DNA of 64,000 nucleotides, from assembly GCF_964188315.1 (NCBI RefSeq), contig NC_135660.1:61938001-62002000 (forward strand), written 5' to 3'. The notes under the pieces were generated by a model. The model worked only from the letters and a program-made list of their open reading frames with translations, was not told where the DNA came from and did not search any database. Each line of letters opens with the position of its first letter. The stretch's first letter is position 1. Source of the DNA: Podarcis muralis (Eukaryota). A program made the translations under genes and the position numbers. Of this stretch, positions 33,963-34,892 are shown piece by piece.

Positions 33963-34892
33963 CTAATGCCAGTCAAAGGAATGATTAATCATTCTGTAAA
34001 AATTTGCATTGTGCTCTCTGAAGTAGGAGTAAAGTTGCTCTAAAACAGTACTGTTGACAACAGGATGTGGCCGTCCTTTTGATTCATGTAAACATCTCTC
34101 TCTTCCATCACTCCTAATGCAATAGAACCCCTTGGTCTGGTTAAAATAAAAATTTGAAGACATAATTCTGGACGGCAGGTTCAGAAATCTTTCCACTTTT
34201 TGTAATTCAGGAAGAGGGTCCTTGATCAAGGTATTTCCATCTACTATGTGAATCTGATTCAAATGGAAATGTTTAAGCCACCTCTCCATGTGGATGTCAT
34301 ACAGACTTCTCTGGATAGCCTTGTATTTGGTATTAAGTGCTCCATTTTTAATAACAATGTCTTCAAAGAGCTGAACAGGCTTGTGGCTTTCCAGCCTGTT
34401 GTAATAGACTTGGGTATAATCAGAGATAACTCTCTCTGTGGGGTCTCTTAGAATAAGCAGCAGTTTAATGGAACTATTCATATCATGAATCCTTTCGGGA
34501 GCCTGTGGCGAGGTAAAATAGCCTGGTGTTTTCTCAATAGTTATTTGATTTTCATATGAAAATGGCATCAGGCCCCTGTACCAGTCAATTCCTTTCACGT
34601 AATTCTCATCCCAGTCGAAGAAGTGAACTTCAGTAGCCGCTACCACAATGTTTGGGTGAACATCCAACATTTCAAGCAAGGCCCTGGTCCCTCCTTTGCG
34701 AACTCCGATGATGATTGTGTGAGGTATTCGTCTGCTCGTTCCGGGAGGTCTCACTTGTGCTGAATAGTGTTCACTCTTATTGCTGAACAGCATCACTTGG
34801 GACTTCAGCGTCTCCATGAGAGCCCCGTTCTCAACTGGAGCGCCATGGGCATGAGTCAGCAGAAGGTATGCTGACACCAGTAGAAAGGCCAT
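33963..34892 (-). CDS. Heparan sulfate glucosamine 3-O-sulfotransferase 1-like (HS3ST1 paralogue), 309 aa, single coding exon
   Basis: 5'-[27 protein letters not shown] (catalytic Glu88), EKTPGYF, 3'-[32 protein letters not shown] disulfide loop, and C-terminal FDWH, all as in HS3ST1. Signal-peptide-like N-terminus and five N-glycosylation sequons. It diverges from recalled HS3ST1 orthologues across the domain, so no symbol is assigned. Confidence 0.97.

Follow-up and report, generated by a model that had tools for sequence, protein, structure and literature searches.

A lizard HS3ST1-like-1 (3-OST-7) orthologue and the conserved Ala/His gate of its clade

The open reading frame under study, located in the 64-kb window (the whole stretch of Podarcis muralis DNA that was analysed), is almost certainly the squamate orthologue of HS3ST1-like-1, the gene named hs3st1l1 in zebrafish and equated there with 3-OST-7 (PMC3849020), and the residues that occupy its substrate gate, Ala86 and His269, represent the state of its whole clade. 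Taken together, the results are probably best explained by an intact lizard HS3ST1-like-1 that acts on 3-OST-1-like rather than gD-type sites. Judging from the orthologues compared, the Ala/His pair is a fixed, clade-wide feature that extends from sharks to birds, not a lineage-specific hybrid, and it is ancestral to the 3-OST-7 clade itself. The protein is not new, as its exact sequence is already present in NCBI, UniRef and nr.

Coding sequence and its surroundings

The reading frame at 33963-34892 of the minus strand is uninterrupted and represents a complete coding sequence in a single exon, and its product contains the Pfam Sulfotransfer_1 domain (PF00685, E 4e-30). The following features were located in the gene:

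33963..34892, minus strand: coding sequence of the very likely HS3ST1-like-1 / 3-OST-7 orthologue, 309 aa plus stop (ORF list, translation)
34893..35020, minus strand: probable 5' UTR portion of the coding exon (scripted look at the upstream sequence)
34842..34892, minus strand: candidate signal peptide predicted to be cleaved off, residues 1-17 (a hydrophobic core followed by A-H-G)
34680..34706, minus strand: 5'-phosphosulfate-binding loop GVRKGGTRA, residues 63-71 (invariant in 40/40 aligned sequences)
34635..34637, minus strand: gate position 1, Ala86, codon GCT (mouse 3-OST-1 Glu88, 3-OST-5 Ser120; ungapped alignment)
34614..34631, minus strand: catalytic stretch Glu88-Val-His90-Phe-Phe-Asp93 (mouse Glu90, His92, Asp95)
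34386..34397, minus strand: C-terminal end of helix 6, Arg166-Leu-Glu168-Ser169 (mouse His168-Leu-Gln170-Lys171; per-clade composition)
34071..34094, minus strand: CLHESKGR loop, residues 267-274, with Ser271, Lys272 and Arg274 (mouse Ser273, Lys274 and Arg276)
34086..34088, minus strand: gate position 2, His269, codon CAT (inside the CLHESKGR loop)

Translation of the reading frame confirmed the residues named in a preliminary description of this DNA, namely Ala86 (34637-34635), the catalytic Glu88 (codon GAA, 34631-34629) and His269 (34088-34086) within RCLHESKGR. Residues 1-17 would form a cleavable signal peptide, a prediction read from the letters and from a helix at 3-13 in the structural model. 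The segment 34893-35020 of the minus strand is probably a 5' untranslated stretch of the coding exon; an acceptor-like AG preceded by a pyrimidine tract lies at 35020-35019 (putative splice acceptor), and candidate ATTAAA signals occur at 33127 and 32009, all of these being called from sequence only. An upstream reading frame of 35 codons (35018-34911, minus strand) begins directly after the putative acceptor and is in the same frame as the main ATG, but is ended by a TGA at 34913-34911. Just upstream of the acceptor there is also an (ATGT)n microsatellite (35136-35166, minus strand), which is probably intronic.

The window has 41% G+C and contains no runs of N. The only other reading frames of at least 150 aa are found at 25330-25846 (both strands, the plus-strand frame of 162 aa overlapping the minus-strand one) and 42351-42983 (plus strand). 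A Pfam scan gave no match for the 169-aa frame at 25330-25839 (minus) or for the 210-aa frame at 42351-42983 (plus), and these frames are probably chance or repeat-derived. The window seems to hold no protein-coding gene other than the HS3ST1-like one.

Identity and age of the 3-OST-7 clade

A word search of protein clusters returned 1781 relatives, of which the best 120 were listed, and the best 81 formed one group. Identity to the lizard protein reached 98% in Rhineura, 95-96% in geckos, 94% in birds and crocodilians and 90-95% in snakes, and was 79-89% in amphibians, 79-82% in bichir, bowfin and sturgeon, 80% in coelacanth, 70-76% in sharks and rays and 66-75% in teleosts; canonical HS3ST1 of alligator, turtle and bird showed just 54-58%. 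Many members of the clade are named "HS3ST1-like", and those of teleosts and Amia "heparan sulfate (glucosamine) 3-O-sulfotransferase 1-like1". In the databases, orthologues from several snakes and some birds go by plain "HS3ST1", which invites confusion of 3-OST-7 with HS3ST1, as happened in the preliminary description, and the HS3ST1 of the turtle Platysternon is labelled "acetylcholine receptor subunit gamma".

Phylogenetic analysis of 50 sequences with IQ-TREE (unrooted, without HS3ST5, HS3ST3 or a gD-type outgroup) resolved three starred clades, corresponding to HS3ST1 proper, the clade of the lizard protein and a third clade, each with cartilaginous and bony vertebrates inside and with an order roughly following the species tree. 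The lizard protein was placed among the squamates, beside Rhineura, in a clade of 27 rows (support 99/96) that also holds Danio rerio hs3st1l1 (NP_001074908) as a member of a 90% cluster. The zebrafish protein is the closest system with functional data: like the lizard protein it has 309 aa, the two are 69% identical without gaps, and their gate and catalytic stretches are the same, yet the N-terminal 55 residues have diverged. Identity as HS3ST1 proper was ruled out by a 100/100 branch that separates the lizard protein from that clade, and the gate differs as well, with Ala86 instead of Glu (or Gln/Asp), though His269 is present.

Several species carry genes in more than one clade: Latimeria is represented in all three, Amblyraja, Narcine, Hypanus, Mobula and Scyliorhinus in two, and Candoia has both a 3-OST-7-type and a canonical HS3ST1 gene. 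The paralogues are therefore older than the gnathostome radiation and, on the evidence of this tree, the 3-OST-7 clade arose before cartilaginous and bony vertebrates diverged, which would give the Ala/His signature an age of roughly 450 million years. That the lizard protein might be the sole 3-OST-1-type enzyme of squamates was ruled out, as Hemicordylus, Anolis and Candoia have canonical HS3ST1. No named mammalian 3-OST-7-type sequence was present among the best 120 of the 1781 relatives, an absence that is telling since an orthologue would be expected near the top of that listing. In matched species, identities within the 3-OST-7 and HS3ST1 clades were 0.83 vs. 0.77 between crocodilian and shark and 0.96 vs. 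0.93 between crocodilian and bird, suggesting that the 3-OST-7 clade has evolved at least as slowly as HS3ST1.

Gate and cleft residues

Among solved structures, the best sequence matches of the lizard protein were human and mouse 3-OST-1 (1zrh, 3uan and 1vkj, E 1e-114 to 1e-116), followed by 3-OST-5 (E 2e-94), 3-OST-3 (E 3e-71) and NDST. The HMMER alignment with the three 3-OST-1 chains was gap-free from residue 47/50 to 309, so that mouse numbering equals that of the lizard protein plus 2 throughout, and it placed Ala86 on the gate residue Glu88, Glu88 on the catalytic Glu90 and His269 on His271, in agreement with the preliminary assignment of the gate positions. In the alignment with 3-OST-5 (3bd9), Ser stood opposite Ala86 and Ala opposite His269, which bears out the Ser/Ala pair given for that enzyme in the preliminary description; the residue-level comparison comprised the five best alignments, and the Gly/Gly pair of 3-OST-3, outside these, was taken from the literature. 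The structural equivalence of Ala86 and His269 with the published gate positions is secure.

An AlphaFold2 model of the lizard protein, built on a 40-sequence alignment, had a mean pLDDT of 82.5 (77-78 in the stretch 261-280), with a disordered linker of low pLDDT at 9-45 and long helix at 151-168. Compared with the PDB at the fold level, as had been proposed, the model was closest to 3-OST-1 (1zrh, 1vkj and 3uan; TM by target 0.91-0.92, rmsd 2.2-2.4 A); structures of 3-OST-5 and 3-OST-3 ranked behind, and TM values ranged from 0.87 to 0.92 over the 3-OST-1, -5 and -3 structures. The Pfam domain, the PDB sequence matches and the TM values all agree on the HS3ST family fold. Glu88, His90, Asp93, Arg65, Lys66, Arg70, Lys121 (mouse Lys123), Lys272 (Lys274) and Arg274 (Arg276) are all present and conserved. 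Based on clade counts and the 40-sequence alignment, Glu88 and His90 were invariant and Asp93 nearly so, and the GVRKGGTRA loop, which holds Arg65, Lys66 and Arg70 (mouse Arg67, Lys68 and Arg72), was also invariant across all three 3-OST-1-like clades.

The residues found at the two gate positions in these clades were as follows:

3-OST-7 clade, 71 full-length clusters: Ala 67, Thr 3 and Pro 1 at position 86; His 71 at position 269
HS3ST1 proper, 24 clusters: Glu 21, Gln 2 and Asp 1 at position 86; His 24 at position 269
Third clade, 11 clusters: Lys 6, Arg 4 and Asn 1 at position 86; Asp 11 at position 269

Since Ala was found in 67 of the 71 orthologue clusters, Ala86 is no chance substitution, and the adjacent Thr87 was present in 70 of them. 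A second word search (best 120 matches listed), which widened the HS3ST1 sample, yielded 26 further, mostly teleost, HS3ST1 clusters with Gln-Asn at 86-87, together with occasional Asp or Arg; mammal HS3ST1 showed Glu-Asn and that of Hemicordylus, two Anolis and Candoia Glu-Ser, with His269 in all. Squamate canonical HS3ST1 carries the motifs AAESE and CLHESKGR. Skate and ray HS3ST1 also has Gln at gate position 1, and with Gln at the gate of many teleosts, skates and rays an acidic residue there is not universal even in HS3ST1. The third clade, with members from sharks, rays, coelacanth, lungfish and bichir, carries Lys or Arg together with Asp, a pair that is charge-reversed with respect to the Glu/His of HS3ST1, as if the two gate positions had covaried. 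Vertebrates have three 3-OST-1-like clades in which the gate was fixed in three ways, as Glu/His, as Ala/His and as Lys or Arg with Asp.

The lizard protein had been viewed as a natural Ala/His hybrid on a 3-OST-1 scaffold. This stands insofar as it is a 3-OST-1-like enzyme with Ala and His at the gate, but the pair is the conserved state of a separate ancient paralogue. The idea of a reptile-specific novelty does not survive the conservation of Ala/His from sharks to birds in the 3-OST-7 clade, and since squamates also keep a canonical Glu/His HS3ST1, there are no grounds for tying the pair to reptile coagulation in particular. Neither in coagulation nor in viral entry does the Ala/His gate point to an adaptation peculiar to reptiles.

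Fixed differences between the 3-OST-7 and HS3ST1 clades were found at just 14 of approximately 260 positions of the catalytic domain, including 86 and 87, and the lizard residue matched the 3-OST-7 consensus at all 14, as well as at Asp77. The signature residues of the clade are Asp77, Ala86-Thr87, Asp95, Gly124, Glu168, Gln252, Ser261 and His294. The catalytic and cofactor residues examined were all invariant, and so were the cleft residues Gln161, Asn165, Lys171, Lys191, Arg195, Arg266, Ser271, Lys272 and Arg274 (numbering of the lizard protein). At the end of helix 6, mouse His168 is replaced by Arg166 (Arg in 71/71 3-OST-7 clusters), Gln170 by Glu168, one of the 14 discriminating sites, and Lys171, invariant in HS3ST1, by Ser169 (Asn, Ser or Ala across the 3-OST-7 clade). 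According to a modelling paper, the recognition residues of 3-OST-1 include, or adjoin, these three positions.

Mouse and human 3-OST-1 (HS3ST1; 1vkj, 3uan, 1zrh) are the closest to the lizard protein in both solved structure and sequence, sharing with it a colinear catalytic domain, the signal-peptide architecture, the gate His, the long helix 6, Trp94 and Asn165. They differ in being a separate paralogue (the lizard catalytic domain is ~64% identical to that of alligator HS3ST1), in having Glu-Asn/Ser rather than Ala-Thr before the catalytic Glu, and in ending helix 6 with His, Gln and Lys where the lizard protein has Arg166, Glu168 and Ser169. Human 3-OST-5 (3bd9, 7scd) belongs to the same 3-OST-1-like subgroup and resembles the lizard protein in having a small side chain, Ser, at the first gate position, but it also has a small one, Ala, at the second. 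Its helix-6 region differs and is shorter, giving alignment gaps, and its match score was lower (319 bits vs. 390 bits for 3-OST-1). The gD-type enzymes (3-OST-2, -3A/B, -4 and -6; 1t8t, 6xl8) share fold and catalytic residues, yet are only ~45% identical, and both gate residues are small in 3-OST-3. The cleft of 3-OST-3 has Arg173, Arg190 and Lys259 where the lizard protein has Asp77 (mouse Ser/Asn79), Trp94 and Asn165, and together with the retained His269 these residues set the lizard protein apart from the gD type.

Substrate specificity and function

Among the steps of heparan-sulfate synthesis, 3-O-sulfation is the rarest and carries the most information. The specificities of 3-OST isoforms 1, 3 and 5 are the only ones that have been well studied, and a search of the open literature turned up no 3-OST-7 orthologue whose products had been analysed. 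The work of Xu 2008, Moon 2012 and Yakoub 2014 is cited here as conveyed in PMC12834895, PMC8341778, PMC7183009 and PMC6272628. The gate concept on which the preliminary description had relied is documented in a 2026 review, which, citing Xu 2008, reports that Glu88/His271 narrow the cleft of 3-OST-1 to 6.7 A, that in 3-OST-3 and 3-OST-5 "much smaller" residues stand at the gate (~14.2 A), and that the mutants H271G and E88G/H271G of 3-OST-1 gained activity and showed altered specificity; these two are the only specificity-altering 3-OST-1 mutants named there. The gate model is nevertheless incomplete, as the side chain of Glu88 is disordered in the complex of 3-OST-1 with a heptasaccharide and the authors of the structural literature themselves state that the gate "does not fully explain" 3-OST selectivity.

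On the basis of its residues, lizard 3-OST-7 is predicted to belong to the 3-OST-1 subgroup of heparan-sulfate glucosamine 3-O-sulfotransferases and to work with PAPS, either secreted or in the Golgi lumen. As in 3-OST-1, Glu88 would take the proton off the acceptor 3-OH so that the sulfo group is transferred in line. Since His269 and a 3-OST-1-type cleft (Trp94, Asn165, long helix 6) are kept, the enzyme would be expected to act on 3-OST-1-like sites, and its product is probably not of the gD type. On the non-reducing side the Glu side chain is missing, and on the reducing side helix 6 ends without its Lys; either change may relax or shift the demands on flanking residues. Given the conserved differences at 86/87 and at the end of helix 6, a specificity other than that of HS3ST1 is plausible, although whether the flanking-residue requirements of the lizard enzyme in fact differ from those of HS3ST1 is a nearly balanced question, with a slight lean against it.

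The preliminary description had proposed that a half-open Ala/His gate broadens specificity, so that both antithrombin-type and gD-type sites would be used, as by 3-OST-5. The position of Ala86 opposite the small Ser of 3-OST-5, the altered specificity obtained by mutational shrinking of the 3-OST-1 gate (in the 2026 review) and the presence at 166 of the same Arg as in 3-OST-3 at that helix-6 position are consistent with such broadening. It is, however, unlikely: the lizard enzyme keeps His269, whereas both mutants named in the review remove the His, the remaining cleft is 3-OST-1-like (Trp94, Asn165, long helix 6), and zebrafish 3-OST-7, with the same gate, was reported not to support HSV-1 entry, the review PMC6272628, citing Yakoub 2014, attributing no contribution to HSV-1 infection to zebrafish 3-OST-1, -5 and -7. 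The negative entry assay, performed in CHO cells, would still be compatible with low-level or different IdoA2S-linked products. A pseudo-enzyme or decaying copy devoid of sulfotransferase activity is highly improbable, with nothing but the absence of the gene in mammals in its favour, since the frame is intact, the catalytic and PAPS-binding residues are all invariant, identity between lizard and bird amounts to 94%, and change has been slower than in HS3ST1 between crocodilian and shark (0.83 vs. 0.77).

Two further readings can be set beside these. It is possible, but doubtful, that the product is the same antithrombin-type motif as that of HS3ST1, with Ala86 neutral and the paralogue kept by partitioned expression. 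The listed recognition residues equal those of HS3ST1 at all but three positions, the gate acid varies within HS3ST1 itself (Gln in the 26 further, mostly teleost clusters, occasional Asp or Arg), the side chain of Glu88 is disordered when 3-OST-1 is in complex with substrate, and the zebrafish knockdown phenotypes are isoform-specific, which fits partitioned roles (PMC3849020). On the other hand, a neutral site would hardly have remained Ala in 67/71 clusters across the entire gnathostome radiation when Glu/Gln or Lys/Arg became fixed in the sister clades, just 14 sites discriminate the clades and 86 and 87 are among them, and a Lys invariant in HS3ST1 is gone from the end of helix 6. We tentatively consider, as a minority possibility, that the 3-OST-7 clade writes a 3-O-sulfated heparan-sulfate motif made by no mammalian isoform, for example a 3-OST-1-type acceptor with changed demands on the -2 and +2 residues, which may be permitted by the Ala/His gate together with a helix 6 whose end lacks Lys and is more acidic. 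Such a motif, if real, would explain the strong conservation of the clade beside HS3ST1 and the non-redundant heart phenotype of zebrafish, and would make the enzyme a natural template for chemoenzymatic synthesis.

Given its slow evolution, its distinct fixed gate and the lack of a mammalian member among the relatives listed, 3-OST-7 is a reasonable target for a specificity study with defined oligosaccharides. Its biological role, by analogy with zebrafish, where 3-OST-7 restricts BMP signalling in the heart, probably lies in developmental signalling and involves nothing reptile-specific: after knockdown of zebrafish 3-OST-7, ectopic BMP signalling left the ventricle non-contracting, an effect that knockdown of 3-OST-5 or 3-OST-3Z did not have (PMC3849020).
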